From sequence record NC_027399.1: 64,000 nucleotides of DNA, one strand, 5' to 3'. Shown here piece after piece: positions 1-64,000 of the stretch (position 1 is its first letter; the number at the start of each line of letters is the position of its first letter). The notes beneath the pieces are model-generated. The model was not told where the DNA came from, did not search any database, and saw only the letters and a program-made list of their open reading frames with translations. The position numbers and the translations under genes are program-made.

Positions 1-1520
1 CTTGCATTTGGTTTAGATGTTGGCAATGATACTGTATTTTTATAAGTAACTTTATCTTTATACATACTACCATCATCACTGAATACATCAGTGTTTTGAT
101 ATTTCCCGGTTGGGTCATTAATGTCAATGAATCGTGACTGACCACTATATATTCGGTTAATAGCTTTTGCTTTTTGAACCAAATTACCCTGACTTAATGG
201 TGCAATATCATAATCCTCACCATTGACAAATCGGTTTTGGGTGTAATATAATTGTGGAGCACGAGCTTTAATCTGTTCCAGAGTTTCAGCACTTTGTGCA
301 CGACTACTTTCGTACTGTAATGTAAATTTAACTTCAAGGATACTCTGTTCGTAGTTTGATTGTGCATTAGTTCTGTACTGATATTTTATACTTTTATTTT
401 GGATATCAGTTGTTTTAATACTGTATGTCATCCCATTACTAACACGATACCACGTTCTGAATGTTCCACGTGGAACAACACCACTTCTTGAATCAGGAAA
501 CTTAATACTAATTTGATCATTATCACGCGTGGTTACAGCGAAAATAGTTTGTTTTTTTCTGTCTACACTGTTATAAGCAACACTTTCCATTGCAGGAACT
601 TTAGTCCATTTGGTTCTTACTAAACCGTCCTGATTAATTTCTTGTACCCAAACATCTGTTTCATTAATATTATTAACATTAATATCCTGTAAACGATTTT
701 CAATACTCACACTATAATCGAAGTCTTGTTTAGAAAGTGTGCCTTGTTTGAAATAAACGAAAAATCCAGTATTGATTGAATTAAAACCATTACCATCATT
801 CTGATAAATGATATATTTTTGTTCTTGTGGTTCAGGATGGCGTTCATCGACACCAGAAGAGCTAATATCAGGGTTTACTACTTCAAATTTCATACTTTCA
901 CCATTTACGTTTGCACTAAATGGGATAGCTGGTGATTGCATTTGATTAGTATTCATTTTATACAAATGAGTACTCAACCCATTCACATTAGTTTTCTTAA
1001 CTGGATTGCCAAACTGGTTGGTACTCACAAAAACATTGTTCATAACCAGAATAAAGTTCTCGTACCAGTTAGGATCAGTAGGGTCATTCCATCTAATCGT
1101 TTTATCTTTAAGTGATTTATTAAAACTATTTCGTACATCCTGGTTTGTTTTTATTTCAGTGACTTTAGCTAATGCACGACCTGGATATGAACGCCTTGGA
1201 GCATAAGAGATCATTTTAGCAAGTTTAAGTACCGAAGCCCTGCGGGTTGCAGTATCCATAAAGTTTTCACGAGTGTTCATGTCCATACGAAATGCAAGGT
1301 TTTGACCAAGCATGGCAATCGTGTCCAGAATGAATAAAAATTCATCATTTGCAATCCAGTCATTGAATGTATCAGGATAGTTAGTACTAAGATAGTCAAC
1401 CATACTTTGACGTATACTATCGAAATCATATGAATTCAATGAAATTTGATAAAAACTTTCATATATTTGCGACCAGTCTTCACCAGCGTATAAATTAGAT
1501 TGTCTTCTTTGCTGAGACAT
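1..1520 (-). CDS. gp6: Baseplate wedge protein, T4 gp6-like (3' end runs off the window)
   Basis: Hand-translated from ATG at 1520: MSQQRRQSNLYAGEDWSQIYESF...SYDFDSIRQSMVDYLSTNYPDTFNDWIANDEF...LAFRMDMNTRENFMDTATRRASVLKLAKMISYAPRR, a typical gp6 N-terminus. Frame is open at both ends checked. Missing from the ORF track because no stop lies in the window. Confidence 0.85.
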   Translation of the reverse strand, partial: MSQQRRQSNLYAGEDWSQIYESFYQISLNSYDFDSIRQSMVDYLSTNYPDTFNDWIANDEFLFILDTIAMLGQNLAFRMDMNTRENFMDTATRRASVLKLAKMISYAPRRSYPGRALAKVTEIKTNQDVRNSFNKSLKDKTIRWNDPTDPNWYENFILVMNNVFVSTNQFGNPVKKTNVNGLSTHLYKMNTNQMQSPAIPFSANVNGESMKFEVVNPDISSSGVDERHPEPQEQKYIIYQNDGNGFNSINTGFFVYFKQGTLSKQDFDYSVSIENRLQDINVNNINETDVWVQEINQDGLVRTKWTKVPAMESVAYNSVDRKKQTIFAVTTRDNDQISIKFPDSRSGVVPRGTFRTWYRVSNGMTYSIKTTDIQNKSIKYQYRTNAQSNYEQSILEVKFTLQYESSRAQSAETLEQIKARAPQLYYTQNRFVNGEDYDIAPLSQGNLVQKAKAINRIYSGQSRFIDINDPTGKYQNTDVFSDDGSMYKDKVTYKNTVSLPTSKPNA

Positions 1521-1730
1521 ATATGTTATTCCTTTAAAATTATGTTGAATGTATTTTTAAAGTGCTGTATAAGTACTGAAATATGATTTTCATCATATCT
1601 AATTCTCAATAGTCATTCTTTATACACGTAATTATGTTTTCTAATGATTCATTATTACTTTGGTATTGTAAATTGATTCATTTAACCATATAAAATACTA
1701 TCCAGTACTATATTCTATGAAGATATTTAT

Positions 1731-1761
1731 AAAATAATAAAGGCTCCATATCGGAGCCTTT
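1731..1761 (-). terminator. Intrinsic terminator-like hairpin downstream of gp25
   Basis: AAGGCTCC-atatc-GGAGCCTT stem flanked by an A/T run, just past the gp25 stop. Confidence 0.6.
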
Positions 1762-1768
1762 AATGTTA

Positions 1769-2158
1769 TTATGAAACAACATAAGATGACATTTTATCAG
1801 TGTTTCTGTTATCAAATACCATACGAAGAGTTTCAACTGAATTTAGAATTACATACTTCAGTTGTAATTCAACTACATAACCGTAATCAATTTTTTCGGC
1901 CGCAATATTCAATAGTTCAACTCTTGGTTCTTCATACACAATTCTCCTACAGTCAGCTTCAATAAGATTGAGTGTGTTGTAGCTATCCAGTGAGAAGATT
2001 AAATCCCAACCAATAAACCCGTAGTTAGCATCAAATGCTCTCTCTCCTTTTCTGGTATTGAAGTGATTGAGAAGGTCTTGACGAATCAATTCTTCATTGT
2101 ATAATGTTTTTGTTCTACCCTGTGATGGAGTAGAGAATCCTTTAAAAACAACAGCCAT
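1769..2158 (-). CDS. gp25: Baseplate wedge subunit, gp25-like
   Basis: LIRQDLLNHFNTRKGERAFDANYG...EEPRVEL pattern of the gp25 family; next to gp6. Confidence 0.85.
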   Translation of the reverse strand: MAVVFKGFSTPSQGRTKTLYNEELIRQDLLNHFNTRKGERAFDANYGFIGWDLIFSLDSYNTLNLIEADCRRIVYEEPRVELLNIAAEKIDYGYVVELQLKYVILNSVETLRMVFDNRNTDKMSSYVVS

Positions 2159-2172
2159 ATATTAATTTCCTG

Positions 2173-2661
2173 TTATGCAGCAGATTCGACGATTTTAGCC
2201 ATTTTATCTGCACGAGATGTAGTTTGACGATACCACAGTGAATCACGCATCTGACGTCCTGCTTCTTTATAATCAGCACGACCTAAAGCAGCAAGTGCTT
2301 TTTTGAAGTTAAGCACTTTTGATTTACCCATTTGAAATACCATTAGCCATAGAACACGCTGTACGCTCTCTGGAGCAGTCATACCGAATTGTTGATAGAT
2401 TGCCTTAGCATCATTGTATGCTTGCTTAGCGTCCTTCAGGAGCAGTGCATCAGCCTCTTTTTCAGTTAGTCCGTTTTTAAAGTTCTCGTCTTTTAAAACC
2501 AGATGACCATAACCAATAGTATCTAGACCTAAACTGTCTTTGTATACCCAGAATTTGTTATTTTTAAAATAACCAAGTTTAGACTGATACGCGATAGTAC
2601 CTTCAAACTCTTTGACTTCAGTAAAAAACTGTTTATCATCACTAGAAATAGACCAGCCCAT
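2173..2661 (-). CDS. T4-lysozyme-like (GH24) muramidase, free-standing
   Basis: E-F-E-G...YKDSLGLDTIGYGHL, MVFQMG and DSLWYRQTTSRA motifs; paralogous to the gp5 C-terminal domain in this window. Confidence 0.9.
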   Translation of the reverse strand: MGWSISSDDKQFFTEVKEFEGTIAYQSKLGYFKNNKFWVYKDSLGLDTIGYGHLVLKDENFKNGLTEKEADALLLKDAKQAYNDAKAIYQQFGMTAPESVQRVLWLMVFQMGKSKVLNFKKALAALGRADYKEAGRQMRDSLWYRQTTSRADKMAKIVESAA

Positions 2662-2697
2662 ATTTTTACCTCTTTTACTTAAATTTACTTGACTTTG

Positions 2698-2705
2698 TAT
2701 TTATA
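2698..2705 (-). promoter_or_regulatory. T4-type late promoter (TATAAATA)
   Basis: Exact TATAAATA on the minus strand 37 nt upstream of the lysozyme ATG; a gp55-like sigma is encoded in the window. Confidence 0.65.
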
Positions 2706-2771
2706 TTAGAGTACATTTGTGTAGTAAAAATATTTGAATACTAAAAGTTGTTAATTATTTAAGGTGTTTAA

Positions 2772-3194
2772 ATGAGATATGATGTTATAAATGATGTTAG
2801 ATCTGTTTCTGTGGTTAATAAAAAGTACTTCTATAAACCAAAAGGTAAAAACAATAAGAAGTATGAAACCATGATTGATGAATACGGAACAGAAGTGATT
2901 TGTAGTGATGTACCACTTGATTTACCAGAATTATCATATGAATACAATTCTTCAATTGAATACAATGGTGTTGAATTTATTTATAGAACGTATATTCGTG
3001 ATAATTATGAAATAGAAGATGATGTAATATACAGACGTATGACAGATTACACTGAAATGGATGAAGATGAGCTATTCCAGTACTCATTGGTATTCGAGAA
3101 TGATAATTTTTCATTTCATGATGCAGTTAAAATACAAAAATGGTTAATTATGAGATATCGTGTTGTTAATACCACGATTAATGTGGATTTATAA
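2772..3194 (+). CDS. Hypothetical protein
   Basis: 140-aa ORF with AAGG upstream; no recognised motif. Confidence 0.6.
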   Translation: MRYDVINDVRSVSVVNKKYFYKPKGKNNKKYETMIDEYGTEVICSDVPLDLPELSYEYNSSIEYNGVEFIYRTYIRDNYEIEDDVIYRRMTDYTEMDEDELFQYSLVFENDNFSFHDAVKIQKWLIMRYRVVNTTINVDL

Positions 3195-3205
3195 GAGAGA
3201 TTATA

Positions 3206-3664: not shown

Positions 3665-3783
3665 CCCAGTATTCATGCGGGTTGTAGGAATTAGGGACAC
3701 CTTTTTGTGTGTTTTTTTGATGCAGTGTCCCTAATTCAGACCAAGAACCCAGTATTCATGCGGGTTGTAGGAATTAGGGACAC
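3665..3783. repeat. Exact 36-bp direct repeat (x2) with an internal inverted half-copy
   Basis: CCCAGTATTCATGCGGGTTGTAGGAATTAGGGACAC at 3665-3700 and 3748-3783; GTGTCCCTAATTC at 3725-3737 is the reverse complement of the repeat's last 13 nt. Confidence 0.95.
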
Positions 3784-4080: not shown

Positions 4081-4386
4081 TGTATTCACTTCTAAGGAGT
4101 TTTATACACTTCCTTAGTGGTTCTATGTCTTAAACAAGAAAACACATCAGAATGCGATACAGGAATTCTCGTAGCTATTATCAAAGCAGTTACTATCCAT
4201 TGTAATATCTGCTCCATTAAAAGGACGCCCAATTCAGTACTGAAAAACTTTTGTGAGTAAGTCATTTCAAACTGATTAATTTAAGGACACCCATTTAAAT
4301 TAACTGTATCCACTTCTAAGAAGTTTTATACAATTCCTTAGTGGTTTTATGTCTTAAACAAGAAAACGCCTCAAAATGCGATACAG
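4081..4386. repeat. 82-bp imperfect direct repeat (x2)
   Basis: 4081-4162 versus 4305-4386: 75/82 identical by hand alignment. Confidence 0.9.
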
Positions 4387-4445: not shown

Positions 4446-7106
4446 TTACTGACATGCCTCAAGACGACGTGCCATAAACTCAGCACGTCTTGTTGTTTGA
4501 CCATACCATGCAGAGTTGCGAATGTGTGCTGCTGCCAGGCGATAGTTTCCCTGTGCCATAGCACCAAGCATACCCGTAAATTGTTGTACGCCCCCTTTAC
4601 CCATCTGGAATACCATCTCGACTAGTACAAGTTGAGCCATATATGGTGTTTTCATCTTATAAGATGCATAGATAGAACTTGCATCGTTGATTGCCTTTGT
4701 ACTATCACGAACCAACATTGCATCAGCTTGTTCTTCAGTAATACCTGAACTGAAGTTTTCACCACGTAATACTAGGTGTCCATAACCAATAGTTGGGAAT
4801 CCTCTACTATCAGTATAAGTCCAGAATTTATCATTTCTAAAGTACCCTTTTGCTTGTTGATATTGTTTAGTACCTTCAAACTCTTTGAGTTCTGGCATTA
4901 ATGTAGAATCACCTGGTTTGATTTGCCAATCCACCGCAGTTTTATCTACTGTACCAATATTCATTTCTTGTGGGGAGTAATTAACCACTGTACTGCTTTT
5001 TGATGTTCTTGGTCGTCTAACCGGAACATGACGAGACCCACGTTGTGCATAACCAGAACCAATTGTTTGTATCTTGGTACTAACAACCAGTTCATTACTA
5101 TCATTACCAGACACCACTACTGTGTTAGATGATGTTTCTTTAGTAGCTTTACCTTGTATTAGTGTTTTATTTGCACATTCTGAACCCGTACCAGTTTGGG
5201 TAGCATAGAATAGACCAGGATCTACCGTACCACTAAAACCATATAAATTGGCTGAATCGACGCGAATTTCAAATTTCAAAATACCACTTGCAGTACCAAT
5301 TTCTTGTCCTTTTTGTACTACATCTTTACTATACAATGAAGTTTTCAAACCATAAAATACTGATTTATACCCAGAATTATGTACAATATACACTGCATTA
5401 TTATATATACCAACTGTACCGGCATCAGGTGCAACTACAGTAGAATTACATTGTATTTCCCAGCCATTATGATCTGTTGTACTTCCTTTATTATCAGTTA
5501 TATTTTTACCCCAATACCCGTACTGACGAATAATACCATTACATGGCATTAACATGTGAAGACCTTCATATGTTTGGGAATAACCATTCATACCAGTGTC
5601 AGTCATTAAATCTTGTGTCTGCACTTGAGATGTTTCTGGGGCGTATGAGATGAACTGTACGGCCTCCTGTTGTTGAGCCTGTACCACCTGTGGCTGGACG
5701 TCATTAGCAGGTTGTGGATGTACTGGTGCCGTAGTTGAACCACTCCCTGAACCATTGTAACCTGTATCTACGGTACTACCATGATTTGATGCATCCTGCC
5801 AGTTTGAAATATTATGAATATGTTCATTAAGTCCAGCATTTGGTGTTTTAAAGTCCGGTGCCATGAATTCAGCAGTACCCTTATTACCTGAAGCATCAAC
5901 TGTAAGATTCTGTCCACCACCACTGATATTAGTGGATGAATCACCGATGATGTTAGCAGTTGAACCTTTCATGGAAACATTACTACCCGCAGTCACATCA
6001 GTACTACTACCGCTTTGTAAACGTAAAGAAGCAGCCGTCACCAATCGTAAATCTGCACCACTATTGATAACTACTTGTCCTTCTATTTTAGAATCCAATG
6101 AACCAAGTAATTCAAGTTTAGTATTACCACTAATACGAGCATTAAGATCCTGTCCAGTTTCTATATTACATGATCTACCAGCAACCATATTAATATCCTG
6201 ACCAGCACGAATGTTAATATTTTTATCGCAGTGAATATTAATATCTCCATCACCGGTAAATGATATACGAGCAGTACCATCACGATTGATTAATAAAATA
6301 TCACCAGTTGCCTCAGATAACATCAACTGAGCACCACTACGAGTACGCAAAACAATACCTTCATTGGTTCTTGCTCCCACCCTGGTATCATTCACTGGGT
6401 TATTGAATTGTGTATCCTGATAAGTATCTGGATCATCATCCCATGAAGGAACATTAAGTTCATCATCGGTATATCCATCATCTAGTACAAAACTATTACC
6501 CCTTGGTGTACTCATACCATATACTGTACTAATCATTTGTCTGGTACTACTTCTGTTAGCTACACCAGCTTCTTTGTCGTATAAAAGGTTTTGTTTTTTT
6601 AAACCTTCAACGATAGGAACATTGACATATTTTTCATTTTGATCAGTACTGATGGTATTTCTGTCATAATCGGTAACTGGTAATGGAGAATCTGTACCAC
6701 TATATTGTGATGTAGTGGAAGTTGCCATACCTGGAACCATTGTGTTCATTCGTTGTTCGTATATACAACCAATCCAGTAAGCTTCATGTGATCTACCCTG
6801 AATGAATATAACAATTACTGGACAGCCTACATCGGGAGGTACCGCCCAGAATCCATAACCTTTTGGATACTGACCGTATGCATCAGCACTCGGTACACCT
6901 GGGGTTTTACCTGCAAATGGAGACATATAAGAACATTCAATCCATGATTTCTTATCGTCTCGTTCACTTTGTGAACCCTGAACCCATACTTTAATTTTAC
7001 CACTCATAGTAGGATCTCGGTTGTCCATAACAATCGCTACCTGTGGATAAGCTGGGTCAAAACGACCCAACTGTTCTTTTGCATACTGTTTACTTGTATC
7101 TACCAT
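4446..7106 (-). CDS. gp5: Baseplate hub/central spike, gp5/VgrG-like, with a degenerate M23-like domain and a C-terminal lysozyme
   Basis: N-terminal OB-fold (DNRDPTMSGKIKVW...GYGFWAVPPDVGCPVIVIF), beta-helix spike repeats, M23-like segment, C-terminal GH24 domain (ELKEFEG...DSRGFPTIGYGHL). Confidence 0.85.
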   Translation of the reverse strand: MVDTSKQYAKEQLGRFDPAYPQVAIVMDNRDPTMSGKIKVWVQGSQSERDDKKSWIECSYMSPFAGKTPGVPSADAYGQYPKGYGFWAVPPDVGCPVIVIFIQGRSHEAYWIGCIYEQRMNTMVPGMATSTTSQYSGTDSPLPVTDYDRNTISTDQNEKYVNVPIVEGLKKQNLLYDKEAGVANRSSTRQMISTVYGMSTPRGNSFVLDDGYTDDELNVPSWDDDPDTYQDTQFNNPVNDTRVGARTNEGIVLRTRSGAQLMLSEATGDILLINRDGTARISFTGDGDINIHCDKNINIRAGQDINMVAGRSCNIETGQDLNARISGNTKLELLGSLDSKIEGQVVINSGADLRLVTAASLRLQSGSSTDVTAGSNVSMKGSTANIIGDSSTNISGGGQNLTVDASGNKGTAEFMAPDFKTPNAGLNEHIHNISNWQDASNHGSTVDTGYNGSGSGSTTAPVHPQPANDVQPQVVQAQQQEAVQFISYAPETSQVQTQDLMTDTGMNGYSQTYEGLHMLMPCNGIIRQYGYWGKNITDNKGSTTDHNGWEIQCNSTVVAPDAGTVGIYNNAVYIVHNSGYKSVFYGLKTSLYSKDVVQKGQEIGTASGILKFEIRVDSANLYGFSGTVDPGLFYATQTGTGSECANKTLIQGKATKETSSNTVVVSGNDSNELVVSTKIQTIGSGYAQRGSRHVPVRRPRTSKSSTVVNYSPQEMNIGTVDKTAVDWQIKPGDSTLMPELKEFEGTKQYQQAKGYFRNDKFWTYTDSRGFPTIGYGHLVLRGENFSSGITEEQADAMLVRDSTKAINDASSIYASYKMKTPYMAQLVLVEMVFQMGKGGVQQFTGMLGAMAQGNYRLAAAHIRNSAWYGQTTRRAEFMARRLEACQ

Positions 7107-12541: not shown

Positions 12542-14686
12542 GTGTTAACATTTAAACGTATTACTATGCGAAATTTTTTCTCCTTTGGTAATGCACCACA
12601 AACAATTGATCTAGATAGTTCAGATATTACACTTGTTCTTGGTCAAAATAATGATGCAGTTATTGAAGGAAATGATAGTTCAGGAAGAAGAAATGGTGTT
12701 GGTAAATCCGCTATTATTCAGGGAATTGTTTTTGGTTTGTACGGAAAAAGTATTGCAAATGAAATTAAAATTCCCAATTTAGTGAATAAAATAAACGGAA
12801 AGAACTGTGAAGTAAAAATTGAATTTGAAAAAGATGGAATTTCTTATATTGTAGAACGTGGGCGTAATCCTGCGTTTTTTAATTTCATTAAACTCAGTGA
12901 TGATCAAATAAATGACGAAAGTCGTGGTGAAAAGAAAGATACACAAGAAGATTTAAATGAAATTTTGGGTATTTCACAATTTCTGTTTGAACACATTGTA
13001 GTGCTGAATGCTAACGTAGAACCTTTTCTTTCCATGTCTGCACAAAAACAACGTGATATGATCGAAGAACTTCTCGGTATTACACAATTAACCGAAAAAG
13101 CACAGCTTCTTAAAGATATGCAAAAGGAAACTAAGCGTTTAGCAGAGCAAGAACGTTTTAAAAATGAAACTATACAAGCAAGTAATGAACGAATTCAAAA
13201 AAGTATAGAAACTCTTCAGGAACAGGCAAATAAATTCGAAATTGACAAGTCAAACCGAATCAGTGAACTAGAAAAACAGATTGAAACCTATTCTGTTCTA
13301 AATTTCGAAGAACTATATGAACAAGCCAATATAAAAGAAGAATCATTAATTCATAATGCTAAGAAATCCAATTTAGAAAATCGCGTATCTGATTTAGTAC
13401 TTAAATATGAATCGTATAAACGAGATATTGAACATAATAAAGCAATACTAAAGATTAATATCGAACGCCTTCAACAAGTTGACATTGTAAGTGAATTAAA
13501 GAATCATGAAGAACTTGAATTGTGGAAACAACTTGAATCTATACTAAAAGAGAACATAACACAAAAGAATTATAAAGAACAAAAAATAAATTTATTAAAA
13601 AGTACGTTACAAAGTTCTAAATCTTCTCTTGAATTGGAAAAAAACAAACTAGATGTGGTACTCAATAGCAAATGCCCACTGTGTAAATCAAGTCTGGAGC
13701 ATAATGAGCATAGTTCTGATATTAAATCAAAAATTCTGAAAACAATTACTGATATTGAGAACTCGATATTAACTATTGAATATGATATTAGTATACTTCA
13801 TGAAGAAGTTGATTCAATTGACGTGTTTGATATGCCTCATAAACCAGAAACTGTGTATAATACACTTACTGAAGCACAAATGCATGAGCATAAGTTACAG
13901 GAGTTAATTAAACAGTACGAAATTGATCAAATCAATATTTTTGAATCAGAATTAATGTCATCATATGAAGAATTAAATTCTTTTGAACTAAAAGATGTAC
14001 CAGATGCACTAACCAAGACTGAAGTTCGTGAACTGGAACTTGCTTATGATTCATTAAAACAACAATTACAACGAGAATTTAGTACAGTAAACACATATAT
14101 TAGTCAAATTAACACACTTCAGAATGAATCCATTGTTGTGGTTAATTATGACTCTTATAATGAACTGGATAAGCTACAAAATCATCAAGATTTTATGGTT
14201 AAACTTCTTCTCAATAAAGATTCATACTTGAGAAAACGTATCATCGAACAAAATATTTCATTTTTAAACAACAGACTTCAGTACTATATTGATATGTGTG
14301 GTTCAGAGCACAATGTTAAGTTCTTGACTGATTTGAGTGTTGAAATTGAAAAGAATGACCAGTACTTTGACTATAAACAGCTTAGTCGCGGTGAACGTAC
14401 TCGTGTTAATATCGCACTGTCTTGTGCCTTCAGGGATACATATGAATCATTATATCAAAATATCAATTTAATTTGTTGTGATGAGGCATTAGAAACTGGC
14501 TTGGATGCTAGTGGTGTATTGAGAGCATGGATGATATTTCAGGACATGGCATCAATCAGAAATAAAAATGTCTTTGTTATTTCACACAGAGATGAACTTA
14601 TTTCAAAAACCGAAAATATCATGAAAGTTACTAAAGAGGATGGATTCAGTACTGTTCAGTACTGTACATTAGACGATATATATTAA
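12542..14686 (+). CDS. gp46: Rad50/SbcC-like ATPase, gp46
   Basis: Walker A NGVGKS, coiled coils, CPLC zinc hook, LSRGE signature, CCDE Walker B, ISHR. Confidence 0.92.
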   Translation: MLTFKRITMRNFFSFGNAPQTIDLDSSDITLVLGQNNDAVIEGNDSSGRRNGVGKSAIIQGIVFGLYGKSIANEIKIPNLVNKINGKNCEVKIEFEKDGISYIVERGRNPAFFNFIKLSDDQINDESRGEKKDTQEDLNEILGISQFLFEHIVVLNANVEPFLSMSAQKQRDMIEELLGITQLTEKAQLLKDMQKETKRLAEQERFKNETIQASNERIQKSIETLQEQANKFEIDKSNRISELEKQIETYSVLNFEELYEQANIKEESLIHNAKKSNLENRVSDLVLKYESYKRDIEHNKAILKINIERLQQVDIVSELKNHEELELWKQLESILKENITQKNYKEQKINLLKSTLQSSKSSLELEKNKLDVVLNSKCPLCKSSLEHNEHSSDIKSKILKTITDIENSILTIEYDISILHEEVDSIDVFDMPHKPETVYNTLTEAQMHEHKLQELIKQYEIDQINIFESELMSSYEELNSFELKDVPDALTKTEVRELELAYDSLKQQLQREFSTVNTYISQINTLQNESIVVVNYDSYNELDKLQNHQDFMVKLLLNKDSYLRKRIIEQNISFLNNRLQYYIDMCGSEHNVKFLTDLSVEIEKNDQYFDYKQLSRGERTRVNIALSCAFRDTYESLYQNINLICCDEALETGLDASGVLRAWMIFQDMASIRNKNVFVISHRDELISKTENIMKVTKEDGFSTVQYCTLDDIY

Positions 14687-14717
14687 AAAAAGGGGAGCAT
14701 ATTAGCTCCCCTTTTTT
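14685..14717. terminator. Bidirectional terminator between gp46 and the convergent nuclease gene
   Basis: AAAAAAAGGGGAGC-atatta-GCTCCCCTTTTTT. Confidence 0.8.
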
Positions 14718-15733
14718 ATTATTGTCATAATTTCATTCAACGATGCAGGTGATACGGTTTCAGTCCACCCATCACCGAATAATTCTTTTGTTAAGTGTCT
14801 TGCTTTTATGGTTCTTTTTATTTCTTTTTCTATGTTAAATGCATCATTACAATTTTCATATACTTTGTGGTATACAACATTCAATTTGTACTTACATTTA
14901 TTTTTATATGAACCCATTCTGTGTTTGATATTCTTTGTTATACCGAATTTATAACCAACTATATTATTATAATCATCAGATACTTCTAAAATGTATATAC
15001 CTGAACTAAAATCAGAAGATTTATAACCATTTTTGTAACTAACAGAATTACACAAAGGACACCCTTTATCTCGCATAAAATTGTCATATGTCATAGACCA
15101 TGTATAATTGCATTTACAAGTTAAAATGACTTTACTAAAAACACCATTAAAGTTCTTTTCATCTATTAATTCAAATTTAATGCCAGTTTCTTTGCTTTTA
15201 ATTTTTAAATTCTCATTTAATTCATTTATACTGTATTTGTGAGTACCTGAACATTTCAAACAACCAATATTATTACTGAAAAATGAATCATAAGTGGTAG
15301 TATTCCATTCGTATGCTTCAGAATGTTTAGTATTGTCATTGCATTTTAGTTTTAAATATGTTTTTGTTTTATTATATTCATCAAACCCGAGGAATTCCAG
15401 TGTCCCACCTCGTTTAATGCATTCATTTTCCACATTTTGAATTAAAATTTCAGGTGTTAACTTATTCAATGAAGGCTTTCTGAACTTTTTTGATTCTATA
15501 TTTCTCAGATATCTATATAATTTGTTAATTCTGTAATTATTATAAGTTATATTATCATGTGTTATTGAAGTAAGTGTATTATTACCTAACCATTTTTCTT
15601 CAATAATGAATCCATTGAATTTTATATTAAATTTGGATAACCTTTTCGATAAATCGTTGAAATATTCCCATGGAGTTCTGGAATTATAGTTAACGTGAAC
15701 TAAAATAATATCATCTGGTAAAGATATTATCAT
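14702..15733 (-). CDS. Putative homing endonuclease: 2 Zn-repeats plus a GIY-YIG/T5orf172-type domain
   Basis: GIYILE...YKFGIT...HR...E...GDGWTET C-terminal domain; repeats ending GCLKC and GCPLC. Confidence 0.7.
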   Translation of the reverse strand: MIISLPDDIILVHVNYNSRTPWEYFNDLSKRLSKFNIKFNGFIIEEKWLGNNTLTSITHDNITYNNYRINKLYRYLRNIESKKFRKPSLNKLTPEILIQNVENECIKRGGTLEFLGFDEYNKTKTYLKLKCNDNTKHSEAYEWNTTTYDSFFSNNIGCLKCSGTHKYSINELNENLKIKSKETGIKFELIDEKNFNGVFSKVILTCKCNYTWSMTYDNFMRDKGCPLCNSVSYKNGYKSSDFSSGIYILEVSDDYNNIVGYKFGITKNIKHRMGSYKNKCKYKLNVVYHKVYENCNDAFNIEKEIKRTIKARHLTKELFGDGWTETVSPASLNEIMTIIKKGS

Positions 15734-16224
15734 TTTTGATCTCTTTTTATATCATTCATATTCAATTGACCACTTTGTATTAGCTTTCTGGCTTGTTTGG
15801 AACGTTCTTTGATGTTACTACCGGGTACTAACCCCAAATCACTAAGAATTTCGCTCTGTTGGTTTGCTGGAAGTCGTTTGAAGCGATTTACATCAACGGT
15901 AAGTGCCGTGTGATGTATAACTTGTTCATCTGGTGAAACAGAATCGTGGTATTCCAGATAATCTGCTAAATTTCTCAATACTTCGTATAACGGTTTATCC
16001 GTTAAATGCTTACAATATTGGTGGAAGCTATTATAAACTTTACCTTCGAACGCATTCACCTCATTTTGTAATACTCCCCTGCAACTCTGTGTATCATAAT
16101 GTCTGTGGTCAAGAACGGGTCTTATTATTTTAATTCCAATAATTGGATCAATACCATTTTGTTCCTTCAGTTTTCCATTTCTATATTTGGCAGCTTCATT
16201 GCTATTTTTTAATCTACGTTTCAT
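15730..16224 (-). CDS. gp49: Recombination endonuclease VII, gp49-like
   Basis: PVLDHRH...CRGVL..EVNAFEGKV...LRNLADYL His-Me motif. Confidence 0.8.
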   Translation of the reverse strand: MKRRLKNSNEAAKYRNGKLKEQNGIDPIIGIKIIRPVLDHRHYDTQSCRGVLQNEVNAFEGKVYNSFHQYCKHLTDKPLYEVLRNLADYLEYHDSVSPDEQVIHHTALTVDVNRFKRLPANQQSEILSDLGLVPGSNIKERSKQARKLIQSGQLNMNDIKRDQK

Positions 16225-16349
16225 GATATAATCTCTTATATTATATATCTAATAAATTTATTTACTTCAATAAATACCTATGTAAATAATCTTTCTGTAT
16301 AATGCATAATTCAATACATAATTTCTTGATACGTTAGATACGGAATAGC

Positions 16350-16385
16350 AAAATAGGTCAGTACTTTTCAGTACTGACCTATTTT
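16350..16385. terminator. Perfect 16-bp hairpin, likely terminator of the gp26/gp51 transcript
   Basis: AAAATAGGTCAGTACT-tttc-AGTACTGACCTATTTT. Confidence 0.75.
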
Positions 16386-16394
16386 TTTCTGATT

Positions 16395-24364: not shown

Positions 24365-24459
24365 TATTTTTAACGCATATTTTAACCACCTTTTTCAGTA
24401 CTGATAAATAACTTTATATTGAAAAAGATTTTAATAAAATTATCTAAAGGAGACTTTAA

Positions 24460-25730: not shown

Positions 25731-26957
25731 ATGATGACATTTGATGAAGTGCATGAACAATTTATTAAAATTGGTAATAAGAGAGAACCATCTTATTTTA
25801 AAAAAATAATTTTAAAAGAAATTGAAATGTATAATTTAAATTATGAATTTATTGGGTTTAATATTAATTCTATTATTGAATTTAAAGGAGCAAGAACGAA
25901 GTTAGTACTAAAATGTCCAGTACATGGTATTTTTTCTGATTGTACTTTCAATAATTTTACAAAATCTAATGCACAGGGTCGCCGCTGTCCTGAATGTGCT
26001 AAAGAATCTAAAGCTTTGAAACAACGTTGTTGTACTGAAGAATTTATTGAAAAATGTAAAAGAGTACATAATGATTTTTATGATTACAGTAAGACTATAT
26101 ACGGAAAAAATGCTCATGAACACGTTGTTGTTACCTGTAAATTACCAAATCATGGAGATTTCAAAATACGTCCTTCATGTCATTATAATAAAGCACAAGG
26201 TTGTCCTATATGTGCAAAAGAAAAAAGAAAAATTGATGAACAGGATATAATAACCAGATTAAATGAAATACATAATAATCACTTTGGATTTGATAAATTC
26301 GTATATAATGGATCGGAAAATAAATCTATAGTAACTTGTTTAGTGCATAATAAAAATTATGAAGTTAAAGTTGGGAGTTTACTTTATGATCATGGCTGTG
26401 CATTGTGTTCAACAAGAGCAAAACACACAAAAGAATCATTCATATCGATGGCAGTACTGAAACATGGTAATGTATATGATTACAGTAAAGTACAATATGT
26501 AGATTTATTCACTAAAGTTGAAGTTGTTTGTAATAAAGATAATCATGGTTCATTCTTTATTACTCCAACAAGTCATATACATGGTTTAAAACCAAATGCA
26601 TGTCCAAAATGTTCAAAATATGGATTTCAACCAAATAAACCTGGATTCTTTTATATTCAAAAAATAACTAATTCATGTAAAGAAGTTATATCTTATAAGT
26701 ACGGTATTACATGTGATTTAATAAGACGATTGAATGAGCATAACAGAAATTCTATATATGTGCATGAATATATTTTTCATGAATACTTTGATAATGGGTA
26801 TGAAGCAATTGAACTTGAAAAGCTTATAAAAAAATCAATTCCTTCTTGGTATTTGAATTCTAATGAATTTGGTGATGGTTTCACTGAAACATACGATCCT
26901 AAATACCACAAAGATGTTATTAATATAATCAAAAAACAACAAAGGAGAAATCCATGA
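25731..26957 (+). CDS. Putative homing endonuclease: 4 Zn-repeats (DUF723-like) plus a GIY-YIG/T5orf172-type domain
   Basis: Repeats C..HG.F.......GCP.C; C-terminal GFFYIQ...YKYGIT...RL...E...GDGFTET. Confidence 0.75.
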   Translation: MMTFDEVHEQFIKIGNKREPSYFKKIILKEIEMYNLNYEFIGFNINSIIEFKGARTKLVLKCPVHGIFSDCTFNNFTKSNAQGRRCPECAKESKALKQRCCTEEFIEKCKRVHNDFYDYSKTIYGKNAHEHVVVTCKLPNHGDFKIRPSCHYNKAQGCPICAKEKRKIDEQDIITRLNEIHNNHFGFDKFVYNGSENKSIVTCLVHNKNYEVKVGSLLYDHGCALCSTRAKHTKESFISMAVLKHGNVYDYSKVQYVDLFTKVEVVCNKDNHGSFFITPTSHIHGLKPNACPKCSKYGFQPNKPGFFYIQKITNSCKEVISYKYGITCDLIRRLNEHNRNSIYVHEYIFHEYFDNGYEAIELEKLIKKSIPSWYLNSNEFGDGFTETYDPKYHKDVINIIKKQQRRNP

Positions 26958-46201: not shown

Positions 46202-47350
46202 ATGGCTAAAAAAAGAACTCAAGAAGAAGCAAATAAATTAGTTTTTGATGCCTGTGAACGCAAAAACTACACATTTAAATCTTTTGTATATAATAACAGA
46301 AATACTAGAATTGATGTACATTGTAATGTATGTGGGTATGAATGGGATATATTGTTTGAAAATTTAACAAGAAATCCTTGTGGTTGTCCAGATTGTGCTG
46401 GATTGGTTAAACGAACACAAGAACAAGCAGAAAATGAAGTACGTCAAAAATGTAATGAAAGAAATTATAAATTTGGAAAGTTTGTTTATGTAAATAATCA
46501 AACAAAAATACCGTTAATTTGCCATTGTGGATACGAATGGGTTTCATGTTCTTTTTCTAAATTTGTACATGGTAACAGGGGTTGTCCACGTTGCTCTAAA
46601 AAAATACAATTAACTCAAGAAGAAGCAACCAAAAAAGTGGATGCAAAATGTAAAGAGAATAATTACTTATATAAGGAATTCTCGTATATTGGAGTTGATG
46701 ATACGAGACTTTTTCTTATTTGTCATTGTGGATATGATTGGAATTGTTCATTTGATAAATTTGTTAATTCAGGAACAGGCTGTCCTAAATGTGGTGGTAG
46801 ATTGCAATTAACTCAAGAAGAAGCCGAAGAACGAGTATTATCTAAATGCAAAGAGCATAATTATACATATAAACCATTTTGTTATCTAACCAATGAAACA
46901 AAAATATCTTTGATTTGTCATTGTGGATATGAATGGGATTGTAGGTATTCATTGTTTGTAATGCCAAACGGAACTGGTTGTCCAAAATGTTCTCATAATG
47001 ATGGACAGTTATATTCATATATACATTCAATAACAGATGATGACGGTAATTTAATTTCTGTAAAATATGGGATAGAAACCACAATCAATAGTAGGAATAA
47101 AAGTCAAAATAAATTATCTAACTATAATATTTCAGTACTTAATACTTACAAATATATTACTGTTGAACAGTGTAAAAATGCAGAAAAAGAATGTATTAAA
47201 TTATTCCAAAAAGAAAACAAAGAACTTTTTGGAAGAAAGGGTTATATAACTAAAGAAGAAATGAGGGATGGTTGGACGGAAACCACATCTGTTTCTAATA
47301 TTGAAAAAATCATTTCTATCTATGAAAAATGGGGTGGAATTAAACAATAA
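46202..47350 (+). CDS. Putative homing endonuclease: 4 tandem Zn-repeats of about 66 aa plus a GIY-YIG/T5orf172-type domain
   Basis: Repeat TQEEA...C...NY.F..F.Y....T.I.LICHCGYEW...F..F....GCP.C; C-terminal LYSYIH...VKYGI...E...RDGWTET; start placed at the ATG at 46202. Confidence 0.75.
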   Translation: MAKKRTQEEANKLVFDACERKNYTFKSFVYNNRNTRIDVHCNVCGYEWDILFENLTRNPCGCPDCAGLVKRTQEQAENEVRQKCNERNYKFGKFVYVNNQTKIPLICHCGYEWVSCSFSKFVHGNRGCPRCSKKIQLTQEEATKKVDAKCKENNYLYKEFSYIGVDDTRLFLICHCGYDWNCSFDKFVNSGTGCPKCGGRLQLTQEEAEERVLSKCKEHNYTYKPFCYLTNETKISLICHCGYEWDCRYSLFVMPNGTGCPKCSHNDGQLYSYIHSITDDDGNLISVKYGIETTINSRNKSQNKLSNYNISVLNTYKYITVEQCKNAEKECIKLFQKENKELFGRKGYITKEEMRDGWTETTSVSNIEKIISIYEKWGGIKQ

Positions 47351-47814
47351 TGGCAAAACCTTGGCATTGGATAATTAAGGACGATAAGAGTAAACTTCTT
47401 GATTTGATTACATATTTCAGTACTGAAATTGATGAAGCAAAGAAAGAAGTTAAAAAGGTTGGTTCTGTTGAGAAATTAGCACAAGACTTACCTGGCTGGC
47501 ATGAAACACGTTTGTCCCAATTACAAGAACTTGAAGCAGTACTGGAAACACTTGAAATAGAAATGAAACAAATACAGGCAGAAAAATTTAAATACTATCT
47601 GGAATCATATCGACGTCAGCTATCCAGTTCAGACTGTAAGAAGTATGTTGATGGTGATAAAGATGTGTGTGATTTGGCTGAAGTTATTAACGAAGTTGCT
47701 TTTCTACGAAATAAATACACCAGTATTATTAAATCATTAGAAATGAAAGCATTCCAATTAAACAATATTGTTAAATTGCGATGTGCTGGCTTGGAAGACA
47801 TTAGACTAGATTAG
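47350..47814 (+). CDS. uvsY: Recombination mediator UvsY-like
   Basis: Helical; LSSSDCKKYVDGDKDV...IIKSLEMKAFQLNNIVKLRCAG. Confidence 0.75.
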   Translation: MAKPWHWIIKDDKSKLLDLITYFSTEIDEAKKEVKKVGSVEKLAQDLPGWHETRLSQLQELEAVLETLEIEMKQIQAEKFKYYLESYRRQLSSSDCKKYVDGDKDVCDLAEVINEVAFLRNKYTSIIKSLEMKAFQLNNIVKLRCAGLEDIRLD

Positions 47815-60210: not shown

Positions 60211-60401
60211 GATCTATAAAAACCGACAATGGTTATAGTATTATCCTTAGTAATGAAGAGTACTCATTATATAGAAAAATTAAAGCTAGAAAAAAAATTC
60301 ACGAAGAATCTCTTCCTGAATATTATCAAGAACTCGCCAATAAACTGGTATCAAGGGGTGTTCTTGATAAAACTGAAGATAATATATATACAGTAAAATA
60401 A
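60207..60401 (+). CDS. Small hypothetical protein
   Basis: 64 aa, coupled to the upstream gene; LSNEE...ANKLVSRGVL. Confidence 0.6.
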   Translation: MRSIKTDNGYSIILSNEEYSLYRKIKARKKIHEESLPEYYQELANKLVSRGVLDKTEDNIYTVK

Positions 60402-60425
60402 TACAATGTAATTAAAGGAAGTTAT

Positions 60426-61079: not shown

Positions 61080-61096
61080 TACTTCAAGGGAATGAA

Positions 61097-62830
61097 ATGA
61101 AAAAATATCTGAAAAATTTAGATACAGAAACAGAAAATCTATTTAATGAAATTCGTTCATTACTAAGTAACAAAAATAGTAAATCATGGCATACCTCAAT
61201 AAATGCTTCTGGAAGGGAGCATTTAAAAAACGCGGTACTCAGAGTCTATCCAAGTAGTGATTTTTTATTATCAGAAGCATTAAAACTGATTATCAATCAA
61301 GAAGAACCACCGTATGCAGTATGTGGTAGAAAATGTAAGTATTTTAATGGTCAGTATGATAGATATTGTTCATTGGGTGTCAAACCCAATAAAAACACTT
61401 ATTGTGAGAAGTGCAATAAACACTGGCGAGAAAAGAAAAACAAATCCACAAAAGAAAACTGTCTAAATCAGTACAATGTTGAACACCCTTTTCAGCGAAA
61501 TGATGTGAAAACAAAAGTACATGAAACTAAAATACGAAAATACGGTACTAATTATAATAAAATAATTTCAAACAAATCATTCAGTACTTATTATAATAAA
61601 ACTGGATATTCATGTCCATTGAGTAATCCAGATATACAACAAAAAATTAAAGAAACTAATATTAAAAATTATGGATATGAAAATCCCGGTTCATCTCCAT
61701 TAATTGTACAAAAAAGAAAAAATACCCAGAAGAAATTATATGGTCATGAACATTCTATGCAGAATGGTGATATAAAACTAAAGGTATTGATTAAATCTGC
61801 CACACAGAGAATGGATAGTATAAATTCAAAACTTGAATTTACTAATTTTATTCCTTTGTTTGATATTAGTGATTTAATTGGTTTGGATACATATAACAAA
61901 ATGCCATACTGGTGTAATACACATGGTTTATTTTATTCATGTAGTAATTATAAAATTATATGTAATGAATGCACTCCCGTTCATATAAGCACACAACACA
62001 AAGAGATATTAAATTTTATAGAAAATCTTGGTATTGAATGTGTAACGAATACACGCTCTGTTTTAAAAAGTACTATGGAATTGGATATTTTTATACCTGA
62101 CTTGAATGTTGCAATAGAAATTAATGGTATGTACTGGCATAGTACTGAATACAAAGAACGACTGTATCATCAAAACAAAATGTTGGAATGTAAAGAACAT
62201 GGCATTCACTTAATACAGATATGGGAAGATGAATGGAATACCAAACAAGATTTGGTTAAATTTCGTTTGATGAATGTATTAAAATGCTCCAGTACTATAT
62301 ATGCAAGAAAATGTAAAATAAAAGAAATCAATAAAAAAGAATGTGATAATTTTATTAATACATACCATATCCAAGGTTCTAGTTCATCATCTATTAGAAT
62401 TGGTTTATATTACGAAAATGAATTATATGCAGTTATGACATTTGGAAAATCCAGATTTGATAAAACTGTTCAGTATGAATTGATACGATATTGTTCAAAA
62501 AGTACAGTCGTTGGCGGTGCATCTAAATTATTAAAGTACTTTGAGAAGAAATACAAACCAGTGTCGTTGATTTCTTATGCAGATGCGTGTTGGAGTACTG
62601 GTGATTTATATATTAAACTTGGTTTTACATATAATGGATTAACTGAACCTGGTTATTTTTATTACAAATCAAGTACTGGTAGAATTTCAAGGCATCAATG
62701 TCAAAAGAAAAAACTAGTCAATCAGGGATATGATGAAAATTTATCAGAATATCAAATATGTACCACTGTACTTAAATATAACAAAATATTTGATTGTGGT
62801 AATTTTAAATTCACTAAATATTACATATAA
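61097..62830 (+). CDS. Hef-like homing endonuclease (YGVE.P-type repeats, Vsr/DUF559-type nuclease, GNAT/Mom-like C-terminus)
   Basis: LDIFIPDLNVAIEINGMYWHS..., IWEDEW, ARKCKIKEI...HIQG...MTFG..R...YELIRYC...VVGGASKLLKYF...SYAD. Confidence 0.75.
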   Translation: MKKYLKNLDTETENLFNEIRSLLSNKNSKSWHTSINASGREHLKNAVLRVYPSSDFLLSEALKLIINQEEPPYAVCGRKCKYFNGQYDRYCSLGVKPNKNTYCEKCNKHWREKKNKSTKENCLNQYNVEHPFQRNDVKTKVHETKIRKYGTNYNKIISNKSFSTYYNKTGYSCPLSNPDIQQKIKETNIKNYGYENPGSSPLIVQKRKNTQKKLYGHEHSMQNGDIKLKVLIKSATQRMDSINSKLEFTNFIPLFDISDLIGLDTYNKMPYWCNTHGLFYSCSNYKIICNECTPVHISTQHKEILNFIENLGIECVTNTRSVLKSTMELDIFIPDLNVAIEINGMYWHSTEYKERLYHQNKMLECKEHGIHLIQIWEDEWNTKQDLVKFRLMNVLKCSSTIYARKCKIKEINKKECDNFINTYHIQGSSSSSIRIGLYYENELYAVMTFGKSRFDKTVQYELIRYCSKSTVVGGASKLLKYFEKKYKPVSLISYADACWSTGDLYIKLGFTYNGLTEPGYFYYKSSTGRISRHQCQKKKLVNQGYDENLSEYQICTTVLKYNKIFDCGNFKFTKYYI

Positions 62831-62849
62831 CTTATAAGGAATATATAAA

Positions 62850-63473
62850 ATGTCTGACATTAAAAAAATCATGGAAGCTGAAAATCGTGTAGAAGCACTG
62901 AAGTTCATGCAGATTAATGAAAGTAATATTGAAAAACTGGAAGTGGTTCTCGCAATCAAATCTGGTATTGCCGATAAACTACAACGTGCTTCTGAGCAGT
63001 TGATGAACTACAGCGTTGACGTTCTCGGTCCAATTGTTGATCGTATTAAAGCAGAAGAAGGTATTGAAGTGGCCGAAGAATTTCAGTCCAGAGTTAAAAA
63101 CATCCTTCAACATGCAGCAGATGTAGTTATGGATGCTAAAGACCAGATCACTAACGAAACTCTTAAACTTACTGGTGATGTAGCTGATAATCCAGATGTG
63201 GCTGATATCGGTATTGATGATGATCTAACCGTTGATGAGGAAACCCCAACTTTTGATATGGAATCTGATGCTTCCTTTGATGATATTGAAGAACCTGTAC
63301 CGGAAGATCGTGCAATGAAAGAATCTGTACAATATACCCAAGTTGGTATCAAAATGGAAAGTACTAAAGGTACTATTGGTACAAAATATTTCAGTACTCA
63401 TAAAGAAGCTGAAAAATGGCTCAAAGAAAATGAATCTAAAGTCAAAAAAGTACTTGGGTTCGAGAAAAAATAA
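62850..63473 (+). CDS. Putative head-associated protein
   Basis: Acidic, helical; IME and MKES candidate cleavage sites. Confidence 0.5.
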   Translation: MSDIKKIMEAENRVEALKFMQINESNIEKLEVVLAIKSGIADKLQRASEQLMNYSVDVLGPIVDRIKAEEGIEVAEEFQSRVKNILQHAADVVMDAKDQITNETLKLTGDVADNPDVADIGIDDDLTVDEETPTFDMESDASFDDIEEPVPEDRAMKESVQYTQVGIKMESTKGTIGTKYFSTHKEAEKWLKENESKVKKVLGFEKK

Positions 63474-63481
63474 GGTTAATT

Positions 63482-63832
63482 ATGAAATTTCGTGATATTG
63501 TAAAAATCACAGAAGATGCACCACCAAAAGATATTCGCAATATGATCACCAGTATTGCATTATCACTAGTTGCATCTGGTAGGGAAGAGGTTGGTATTCA
63601 GTCATTGGTTAATGAAATTAAGAAAAGGACTGGTATTGATGTTCCTTATAATGTGATGATGGATATTTTAAATTCGTTGCCATTTGTTCAGGATGCAAAT
63701 TCTGATAGAGTACAATTTTCAGGAACTGATACCAGTACTGACTTTAAGCAACCTAATTCAGAAGAAAGTTCTGAACAAAAAGTACAAGATATGGCTGGTA
63801 AAGCAGCCACCGACAGTATGAAATCACTATAA
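63482..63832 (+). CDS. Putative head-associated protein
   Basis: MKFRDIVKITED N-terminus resembles a capsid-targeting leader. Confidence 0.5.
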   Translation: MKFRDIVKITEDAPPKDIRNMITSIALSLVASGREEVGIQSLVNEIKKRTGIDVPYNVMMDILNSLPFVQDANSDRVQFSGTDTSTDFKQPNSEESSEQKVQDMAGKAATDSMKSL

Positions 63833-63837
63833 AATTT

Positions 63838-63867
63838 TTGAACAAAAAGACAAAAATAAGCTATAAT
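63838..63867 (+). promoter_or_regulatory. Early/middle promoter TTGAAC-N18-TATAAT
   Basis: Motif family member upstream of the ATG at 63885. Confidence 0.6.
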
Positions 63868-63884
63868 TATGGAGTAACAAGGGA

Positions 63885-64000
63885 ATGTTTGTTCCACCTA
63901 TTATTAGCAGATATTCTTATGTTGATTATAAAAGAATTGAAGGCGGCTCTCAGGGTCGCCTTTATTCTACCCCAACCGGAAATCTGCCATCGGTAACTAC
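63885..64000 (+). CDS. 5' end of a PD-(D/E)xK (Cas4/ExoV-like) exonuclease, running off the window
   Basis: Hand translation MFVPPIISRYSYVDYKRIEGGSQGRLYSTPTGNLPSVT matches the R.Y.TP.G..PSVTT N-terminus of phage exonucleases. Confidence 0.65.
   Translation, partial: MFVPPIISRYSYVDYKRIEGGSQGRLYSTPTGNLPSVT

Follow-up and report, generated by a model that had tools for sequence, protein, structure and literature searches.

The closest known phenomenon to the one described here is HIP1 (GCGATCGC), a palindrome of cyanobacteria that recurs across the genome at intervals of roughly 0.4-1 kb, in non-coding DNA and in several frames of coding DNA, much more often than base composition predicts, and that is a trait of lineages. 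HIP1 holds a CGATCG core, which is methylated by known cyanobacterial methylases. We have analysed a stretch of 64,000 nucleotides, called the window below, which corresponds to positions 62001-126000 of the record of Klebsiella phage K64-1 (NC_027399.1 / AB897757.1, identical sequence), and in which an earlier note made from the letters of the DNA had reported an excess of the palindrome AGTACT. The likeness to HIP1 is that one short palindrome is hugely over-represented throughout the genome, in several frames and in non-coding DNA, beyond what codon use explains, and is shared by a lineage. The two differ in sequence and in host kingdom, and K64-1 is a virulent phage, not a cell. Furthermore, the HIP1 site has known methylases whereas no cognate methylase is supported for AGTACT, and the phage motif also occupies a fixed place in early promoters. 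Its occurrence in a virulent phage clade and its promoter-embedded role are the new elements of the present case.

Three other groups of described elements share some of these features. The nucleoid-occlusion factor SlmA binds GTGAGTACTCAC (PMC3020112), a 12-bp palindrome with the same AGTACT core, which is read by a dimeric helix-turn-helix (HTH) protein and is scattered so as to mark the chromosome. Escherichia coli has only ~50 SlmA sites, however, compared with 940 AGTACT sites in the phage, and SlmA requires G1 and T2 followed by a purine at position 3, where the phage site has T, T and C. The PeSL cassettes of T4-type phages (PMC2839356, PMC4122927) repeat a sigma70 early promoter, a stem-loop and a Shine-Dalgarno sequence with start codon before small genes in plastic regions. 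Their likeness is limited to the early zones of K64-1 and of phage 121Q and does not extend to the sites of the window. Published PeSLs lack AGTACT, and their stem-loop lies upstream of the promoter, whereas many of the phage hairpins lie downstream of it in the 5' untranslated region (5'UTR); PeSLs also leave unexplained the ~900 sites inside genes, including the window's 121 coding sites. Chi and the uptake sequences DUS and USS are, like AGTACT, short words that reach a high genome-wide density by selection or drive, are tolerated in genes and turn over between relatives. These words are asymmetric and strand-oriented and have known readers, whereas AGTACT with its flanks is palindromic. 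The motif is not mentioned in the literature that we searched on phages RaK2, CBB, PA5oct and Sharanji, on jumbo-phage comparison, on motifs of Asteriusvirus, and on HIP1 in phages.

K64-1 is a RaK2-like jumbo myovirus of the genus Alcyoneusvirus with a genome of 346.6 kb. The window, in which 94.7% of the sequence is coding (RefSeq annotation) at a GC content of 32.7%, holds genes for baseplate, head, DNA polymerase, terminase, recombination and primase functions. Positions are those of the window unless they are marked as record positions. AGTACT occurs exactly 127 times, in close agreement with the ~125 sites that had been counted by hand, and is the sixth most frequent hexamer; the most frequent 10-mer, TCAGTACTGA, is present in 10 copies. 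The zero-order expectation for AGTACT is 21.6, and 100 dinucleotide-preserving shuffles of the window gave a mean of 15.0 with a maximum of 23, so that none reached 127. GTAC itself is common, as had been suspected, with 398 copies against 192 expected. Markov models of orders 0, 1, 2 and 3 expect 21.6, 15.1, 29.2 and 61.5 copies of AGTACT, respectively. A model of order 4 expects 121, because AGTAC (221 copies) and GTACT (218 copies) are themselves enriched. Since these 5-mers carry the same signal, an order-4 model cannot separate the 6-mer from its own 5-mers, and it is therefore uninformative, neither explaining the excess nor meaningfully refuting it. The density of sites had also been described as uneven. 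This impression is mostly noise, as the counts per bin scatter in a Poisson-like manner (variance/mean 0.8-1.1; chi-square p = 0.35), and what is seen is a mild gradient, from 1.5 per kb over 1-30 kb to 2.35 per kb over 30-53 kb.

Annotated coding sequence (CDS) contains 121 of the 127 sites, and six are intergenic (1704, 16360, 16370, 24397, 54036 and 61078). The corresponding densities are 2.0 per kb for coding and 1.8 per kb for non-coding DNA, and genes of either orientation have equal densities. For a synonymous null, synonymous codons were shuffled within each gene, which keeps every protein and the codon usage of each gene. In 300 trials, this shuffle yielded 40.2 ± 5.3 AGTACT (maximum 56) compared with 121 observed in the CDS of the window, and a permutation of whole codons yielded 25 ± 5. 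The sites fall in all three reading frames, as the earlier note had stated: 72, 12 and 37 are in the frames AGT-ACT, xAG-TAC-Txx and xxA-GTA-CTx, where the synonymous shuffle expects 27, 2.5 and 10.5. Each frame is thus enriched 2.7-4.7x, and non-coding DNA ~5x. Measured against the same null, AGTACT ranks first among the 4096 hexamers (z = 13.6), and the next outliers are its own overlapping extensions CAGTAC (z = 12.2) and GTACTG (z = 8.5). The sister hexamers AGTACA (z = 4.6) and TGTACT (z = 1.9) are not equally enriched, and the one-step neighbours AGTATT and AATACT have z-scores of 2.0 and -0.9. The excess consequently persists under dinucleotide-preserving, order 0-3 Markov and codon-preserving nulls, and the two codon-level shuffles place it at the level of DNA and not among the by-products of codon or dipeptide use.

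The motif has in fact reshaped the phage proteins. Ser-Thr dipeptides are over-used (149 compared with 94 expected), as are Val-Leu dipeptides (130 compared with 95), and the reversed pairs Thr-Ser and Leu-Val occur at expectation. AGT and ACT are the commonest codons for Ser (34%) and Thr (50%); within Ser-Thr pairs, however, AGT accounts for 74% of the serine codons, compared with the 34% seen overall, and the motif therefore drives codon choice and not the reverse. Seven phage tRNA genes are located outside the window, at record 177141-180428, and include a tRNA-Ser(GCU), the reader of the AGT codon that is inflated by the motif.

A 12-bp dyad-symmetric site, TTCAGTACTGAA, is built around AGTACT as its indispensable core. 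Counts over the whole K64-1 genome, with the ratio of observed to expected numbers (O/E), are as follows.

GTAC: 2514 observed, O/E 2.5x
AGTACT: 940 observed, 117 expected, O/E 8.0x
8-mer CAGTACTG: 242 observed, O/E 83x
10-mer TCAGTACTGA: 71 observed, O/E 210x
12-mer TTCAGTACTGAA: 33 observed, 0.04 expected, O/E 839x

The second-best 8-bp palindrome of the genome reaches only 8x. To the left of the core, T, T and C have frequencies of 0.47, 0.42 and 0.44, and to the right G, A and A have frequencies of 0.48, 0.46 and 0.52. G at position -1 (0.08 compared with a background of 0.17) and C at position +1 are depleted. This flank symmetry holds although most genes lie on one strand. A scan of substitutions shows that the central GTAC is indispensable and that a change in a single half-site lowers the 83x enrichment to ~1-4x, while a change of the outer C or A in one half is tolerated, with 7-18x left. 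Enrichment is seen only with a TA centre and with zero spacing between the half-sites. The site density is ~1 per 370 bp genome-wide (~2.7/kb). Dyad symmetry and a specificity that is concentrated in two half-sites are what is expected of an operator-like element, and the symmetry together with the sharp specificity profile is that of a site read by a putative symmetric dimer. A general tendency to form hairpins does not fit, because the palindrome arms extend past the motif only slightly more than at other centres, nor does RNA structure serve as a general explanation, because a typical site folds at only -0.9 kcal/mol.

The AGTACT excess is a trait of the Enterobacterales-infecting RaK2 / 121Q / GAP32 / CBB jumbo-phage clade. 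All five sampled members are AGTACT-rich (6.3-13.4x), in contrast to the outgroups PA5oct, Atu_ph07, T4, muut and E. coli (0-0.4x). K64-1 was examined as a whole genome, and relatives as stretches where so listed; GCGC is given as observed/expected.

K64-1, whole genome: AGTACT 8.0x; GCGC 0/216
Turkey3 (121Q-like, infecting E. coli): AGTACT 6.3x; GCGC 0/47
121Q, stretch with the early zone: AGTACT 13.4x; GCGC 0/53
GAP32 (Cronobacter), two stretches: AGTACT 6.8x and 8.2x; GCGC 0/52 and 0/46
CBB (Pectobacterium): AGTACT 6.7x; GCGC 0/54
PA5oct (Pseudomonas): AGTACT 0.2x; GCGC 47/35
Atu_ph07 (Agrobacterium): AGTACT 0.2x; GCGC 59/54
T4: AGTACT 0.4x; GCGC 40/31
muut: AGTACT 0 sites, 10 expected (30 kb); GCGC 48/35
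E. coli K-12, 50 kb: AGTACT 0.3x (3 sites, 11.6 expected); GCGC 342/215

In T4, muut, PA5oct and Atu_ph07, AGTACT is under-represented, as palindromes usually are. The phage carries ~2.7 sites per kb compared with ~0.06 per kb in the E. coli sample, a ~45-fold difference. The absence of GCGC co-occurs exactly with the AGTACT excess across the sampled genomes. The window has no GCGC (21-45 expected), and the K64-1 genome lacks CTTAAG (0 compared with 117) and eleven other 6-bp palindromes (0 compared with 25 each). The earlier note had set the AGTACT excess against the usual avoidance of palindromes by phages, and the contrast is borne out within a single genome that contains no GCGC, no CTTAAG and none of ~11 other 6-bp palindromes. 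Restriction-site avoidance in virulent phages is thus present in this clade in an extreme form, yet AGTACT goes the opposite way at 8x, and the extreme avoidance makes the single amplified palindrome more remarkable. Phage genomes are a textbook case of palindrome avoidance; here, extreme avoiders keep one palindrome at 8-800x, even at the price of changing proteins. This implies a strong function at the DNA level, in a phage group some of whose members are candidates for therapy against Klebsiella and E. coli. The motif also offers a practical genomic signature for spotting the clade in metagenomes.

Individual sites turn over while their density is maintained. Thirty orthologous genes of K64-1 and Turkey3 were aligned (27.7 kb, 70% nucleotide identity). 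They contain 65 sites in K64-1 and 56 in Turkey3, and the 20 shared sites amount to 31%, compared with a baseline of 17-18% for any hexamer. Within conserved Ser-Thr pairs, AGT-ACT is kept in 13 of 15 cases, while ~42% would be expected from the retention of AGT and ACT elsewhere. Where a site is not shared, the aligned sequence of the other phage usually diverges strongly, and amino-acid changes are frequent. AGTACT density is similar across phages of three genera though only about one third of the sites are shared, and this turnover at constant density argues for continuing gain of sites combined with purifying selection on existing ones. The proposal of the earlier note, a recurring cis-signal under positive selection, is therefore upheld in part. 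The signal acts at the DNA level, is dyad-symmetric, is kept at constant density and has conserved sites, all of which fits selection or drive; the functions that had been proposed for it are not established, and no result points to a packaging or recombination cue.

The most specific context of the motif is found outside the window. At record 220-250 kb, in an early region of small open reading frames (ORFs), K64-1 has 52-71 AGTACT per 10 kb. Predicted early sigma70-type promoters of this region incorporate AGTACT in the layout AAAAGTAC|TTGACA-N14-cAGTACTG-TATAAT, with the motif phase-locked to TATAAT and TTGACA. An AGTACT adjoining the -10 element is present in 24 of 44 sigma70-like promoter candidates at record 222-246 kb, compared with 10 of 278 elsewhere, and 10 of those 24 promoters also have AGTAC against the -35 element. 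Twenty pairs of AGTACT sites in K64-1 are exactly 20 bp apart. Apart from these promoter pairs no periodic spacing was found, and outside the hot zone the spacing is slightly more even than random (coefficient of variation 0.906 compared with 0.997 ± 0.044, P = 0.013). AGTACT is not phased to the late (TATAAATA) or middle (TGAAACG) promoter boxes, and no early-type promoters were found inside the window. Among the promoters in the early zone of 121Q, 18 repeat the -10-proximal AGTACT. In the early zones of both K64-1 and 121Q, the site overlaps core promoter elements, abutting -10 and -35.

Several 5'UTRs of the early zone carry hairpins with co-varying arms (GGGAATC, GGGTATC, GAGATTCC) and a constant CAGTACTG apex. 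These hairpins have folding energies of -13 to -14 kcal/mol, with GUAC as the loop, and lie 10-25 nt ahead of the Shine-Dalgarno sequence. Modules composed of a sigma70-like promoter, a stem-loop and a Shine-Dalgarno/ATG are repeated as cassettes at record 222-246 kb in K64-1 and at 135-153 kb in 121Q. A second class of early promoters in K64-1, lacking AGTACT, overlaps a terminator-like hairpin (GGGGTTGACTTCGGTCAGCCCCTTTTGTTATTAT) at record 222737, 233157, 234985, 238714, 241390 and 243275, and is a closer match to the published PeSL design.

We tentatively favour the reading that TTCAGTACTGAA is a selected binding site of a sequence-specific dimeric DNA-binding protein, which gates early promoters and, through the dispersed sites, is specific for the phage chromosome; we regard this as a real possibility, if somewhat short of probable. 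The protein is presumably phage-encoded. In the early region, one copy of the site occupies the promoter spacer directly against the -10 element, often with a second copy 20 bp upstream against the -35 element, and a protein bound there would gate sigma70-RNA polymerase, for which a shut-off of early transcription is the simplest reading. The ~900 dispersed copies are located where their cost is low, in Ser-Thr and Val-Leu codon pairs, in hairpin arms and apices, and in spacers. Given the ~45-fold site density over the host, binding by the same protein would selectively coat or mark the DNA of the phage. The enrichment, symmetry, specificity, codon independence, clade distribution, turnover with conservation and promoter phase are observed; a reader protein and the effect of its binding are what we infer. 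A reader of this kind, if there is one, would represent a new global regulator or organiser of the jumbo phage chromosome and a tractable model for HIP1-like palindromes. As the site is short, sharply defined and located in early promoters, the question is directly testable. An extended version, which we consider unlikely as a whole, holds that self and host chromosomes are told apart by sequence. The absence of GCGC and other palindromes would be the negative mark and ~2.7 TTCAGTACTGAA per kb the positive one; the latter would be recognised by a phage protein that coats or organises the phage DNA genome-wide and switches off early promoters through the same site. Such a two-signature arrangement in jumbo phages would be the sequence-encoded counterpart of self-marking by base modification in T4.

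Several observations weigh against a dimeric reader that acts as a promoter gate. An operator function alone does not account for the dispersed copies, because hundreds of extra sites would titrate a classical repressor. Two annotated GAP32 promoters were inspected and both lack AGTACT, so that the promoter role may be lineage-specific or partly a matter of cassette duplication. Given GTAC, the left A and the right T are almost independent, as reflected in the order-4 Markov expectation of 121 compared with 127; this near-independence fits an additive weight matrix without extra cooperativity. A Pfam scan of 20 uncharacterised window proteins found no HTH or ribbon-helix-helix domain, and GAP32_488, an HTH protein encoded beside the GAP32 sigma factor, is without a homologue in K64-1. 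Among the early-zone products, only gp430 is annotated as DNA-binding; it is found in RaK2-like and 121Q-like phages only and was not detected in GAP32 or CBB; moreover, proteins of the H-NS fold family read AT-rich minor grooves, not palindromes. This protein is a phage-encoded H-NS homologue (record 230004-230504, outside the window) with 34% identity to 121Q gene 277; its N-terminus matches Pfam Histone_HNS_N, and its C-terminus resembles the H-NS DNA-binding domain without the usual Q/RGR loop.

Among the competing explanations, it is rather unlikely that AGTACT is the target of a phage DNA-modifying enzyme, either gp580 or an unrecognised one, with the modified sites serving as an epigenetic self-mark. 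K64-1 has three DNA-modification enzymes (Mom-family gp190, C5 methylase gp237 and Dam-family N6-adenine methylase gp580), and the recognition of AGTACT is sharp over 6-8 bp, like that of type II enzymes. RaK2 DNA carries 5-methylcytosine at CpG, as determined by bisulfite, and resists many restriction enzymes (PMC3622015). The methylase gp237 is 100% identical to the RaK2 enzyme, but AGTACT contains no CpG, which eliminates gp237 as the reader; its nearest homologue outside the clade is in phage muut, which has 0 AGTACT in 30 kb. The closest relatives of the Mom-like gp190 are in Vibrio ICP1-type phages, and a Mom-like gene is seemingly absent from the 121Q-like E. coli phages, which have the motif, so that gp190 was rejected as well. 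The modification target put forward in the earlier note has in this way lost its two best candidates. The remaining enzyme, gp580, has close homologues (60-80% identity, 37 records) among which the 121Q group is probably represented, yet its Dam family is very widespread among phages, and AGTACT is not in excess in the two outgroup phages that were sampled. Modification moreover gives no reason for an 8-800x enrichment, and a flank preference that is graded out to 12 bp does not resemble the site of a methylase. A type II restriction-modification target of the ScaI / RsaI type does not fit, as AGTACT is enriched 8x rather than avoided and no matching methylase is supported. A non-adaptive drive by biased mismatch repair, gene conversion or mutation, comparable to very-short-patch repair or to the spread of uptake sequences and giving no function to any one site, would account for the two thirds of sites that are lineage-specific at constant density, and for sites that appear wherever the sequence is free to vary, hairpin arms and apices included; T4-like phages also recombine heavily. 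We nevertheless consider a drive distinctly unlikely, given that one-step neighbours are not depleted (AGTATT 58 compared with 31-45 expected; AATACT 52 compared with 39-44), that existing sites are conserved above codon expectation, that the promoter position is fixed across genera, and that no Vsr-like gene is annotated beside the methylase.

The dispersed, slightly over-even and strand-independent distribution, with constant density across genera, might also be expected if AGTACT were the entry or action site of a DNA enzyme on the 346-kb chromosome, such as a primase with long recognition, a T4-type topoisomerase II or a nicking enzyme, and the phage does encode a primase, a primase-helicase and a topoisomerase II. 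This idea appears improbable, as it leaves the fixed early-promoter position unexplained, the recognition sequences of known primases are 3 bases long, and the type II topoisomerases that are known show little site preference. Exploitation of a host DNA-binding protein of the Enterobacterales, for which SlmA is the lead, is a very improbable explanation. It would agree with the fact that all motif-rich phages infect Enterobacterales while the Pseudomonas and Agrobacterium relatives lack the motif, although host range and phylogeny are confounded in the sample. The SlmA site shares the AGTACT core (PMC3020112), its A4, G5 and pyrimidine 6 (AGT/ACT) being identical in the phage site, and E. coli under-represents AGTACT. 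The flanks that SlmA requires are not found, however. There are only 2 strict SlmA sites in 346 kb, GTR occurs on even one side in just 12 of 940 sites, G at -3 has a frequency of 0.13 (background 0.17), and at -1 C is preferred (0.44) over G (0.08); a hijack of SlmA was rejected on these grounds. A role of the motif at the RNA level, either through hairpin formation or through recognition by a nuclease or RNA-binding protein, finds examples in the early 5'UTR hairpins, whose arms co-vary around a constant CAGUACUG apex, and in a terminator of the window that uses the motif in both arms. As a typical dispersed site does not fold, flanks are symmetric, densities are equal in both gene orientations and in non-coding DNA, and no Rfam family matches, an RNA function explains only a few dozen copies and is highly improbable as the origin of the excess. 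That the excess follows from codon usage, from amino-acid composition or from a bias in dipeptides could be suspected from the 72 of 121 coding sites that read AGT-ACT, from AGT and ACT being the commonest codons, and from the phage tRNA-Ser(GCU); this explanation has practically no probability left and is ruled out by the synonymous and whole-codon shuffles (40 ± 5 and 25 ± 5 compared with 121), by the enrichment in three frames and in non-coding DNA, and by the first rank of AGTACT at z = 13.6.

Individual features of the window are listed here; all but the last carry no strand.

1-64000: dispersed AGTACT, core of TTCAGTACTGAA, 127 copies
16350-16388: intrinsic-terminator hairpin AAAATAGGTCAGTACT-TTTC-AGTACTGACCTATTTTTTT between gp115 and gp116, with one AGTACT in each arm (16360 and 16370)
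14648-14663: TTCAGTACTGTTCAGTACTG, which holds two AGTACT at a distance of 10 bp, at the 3' end of gp113, the Rad50-like gene
47414-47429: ATTTCAGTACTGAAAT, a perfect palindrome of 16 bp within the UvsY-like gene (record 109420), the longest of its type in the window
24395-24404: a full 10-mer, TCAGTACTGA, in the intergenic DNA ahead of the major capsid gene, adjoining an ATAAATA late-promoter-like box
4234-4243, and starting at 6643, 11015, 12306, 16368, 24395, 37890, 38855, 43305 and 47417: copies of the 10-mer TCAGTACTGA
14702-15733, minus strand: gp114, a T5orf172/MUG113 (GIY-YIG-type) nuclease with a DUF4379 treble-clef zinc finger; no AGTACT

The terminator at 16350-16388 has a ΔG of -21.2 kcal/mol (z = -9.2 compared with shuffles) and is followed by a U-run. 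It is the sole structural use of AGTACT inside the window, and contains the two copies that had been attributed to it. The pair at 14648-14663, by comparison, would form only a weak hairpin as RNA (-7.4 kcal/mol, z = -1.3). The two sites that had been placed in the gp5-like hub gene are located at 6000 and 6645. Among the examples that had been given as intergenic, 1704 and 24397 are so, whereas 1572 lies within an annotated ORF of 27 codons, and the site reported at 4215 is really at 4236, within a small annotated ORF. Pairings with a late box like that at 24395 number just 2 in the whole genome, which indicates that AGTACT has no general link to late promoters. T4-type late-promoter-like words are strongly depleted within the window genes compared with the codon-preserving null (TAAATA z = -4.6, TATTTA z = -5.3, and also AAAAAA z = -6.3), and the depletion of TAAATA and TATTTA suggests selection against spurious late promoters.

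The tail-fibre block is mildly lower in AGTACT (1.73 per kb, P = 0.018). Over the whole K64-1 genome, the Chi word of E. coli, GCTGGTGG, has 13 copies on the plus strand and 3 on the minus strand, compared with 0.8 expected; this excess may simply reflect the favoured codons GCT-GGT-GG. The AGTACT-free gap that had been noticed extends from 14658 to 16360, and most of it is accounted for by gp114. This gene is missing at the orthologous place in Turkey3, between the Rad50-like and endonuclease VII genes, and for that reason looks like a mobile nuclease insertion. An overall depletion of AGTACT in mobile nuclease genes, as would result from slow amelioration, is not supported (2.16 compared with 2.37 per kb). 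Two further genes annotated as 'endonuclease', gp126 (25731-26957, plus strand) and gp148 (46202-47350, plus strand), combine CapR-homology and DUF4379 zinc-finger domains. One of them adjoins the capsid gene and the other the recA-like gene, and both are probably further mobile nucleases.

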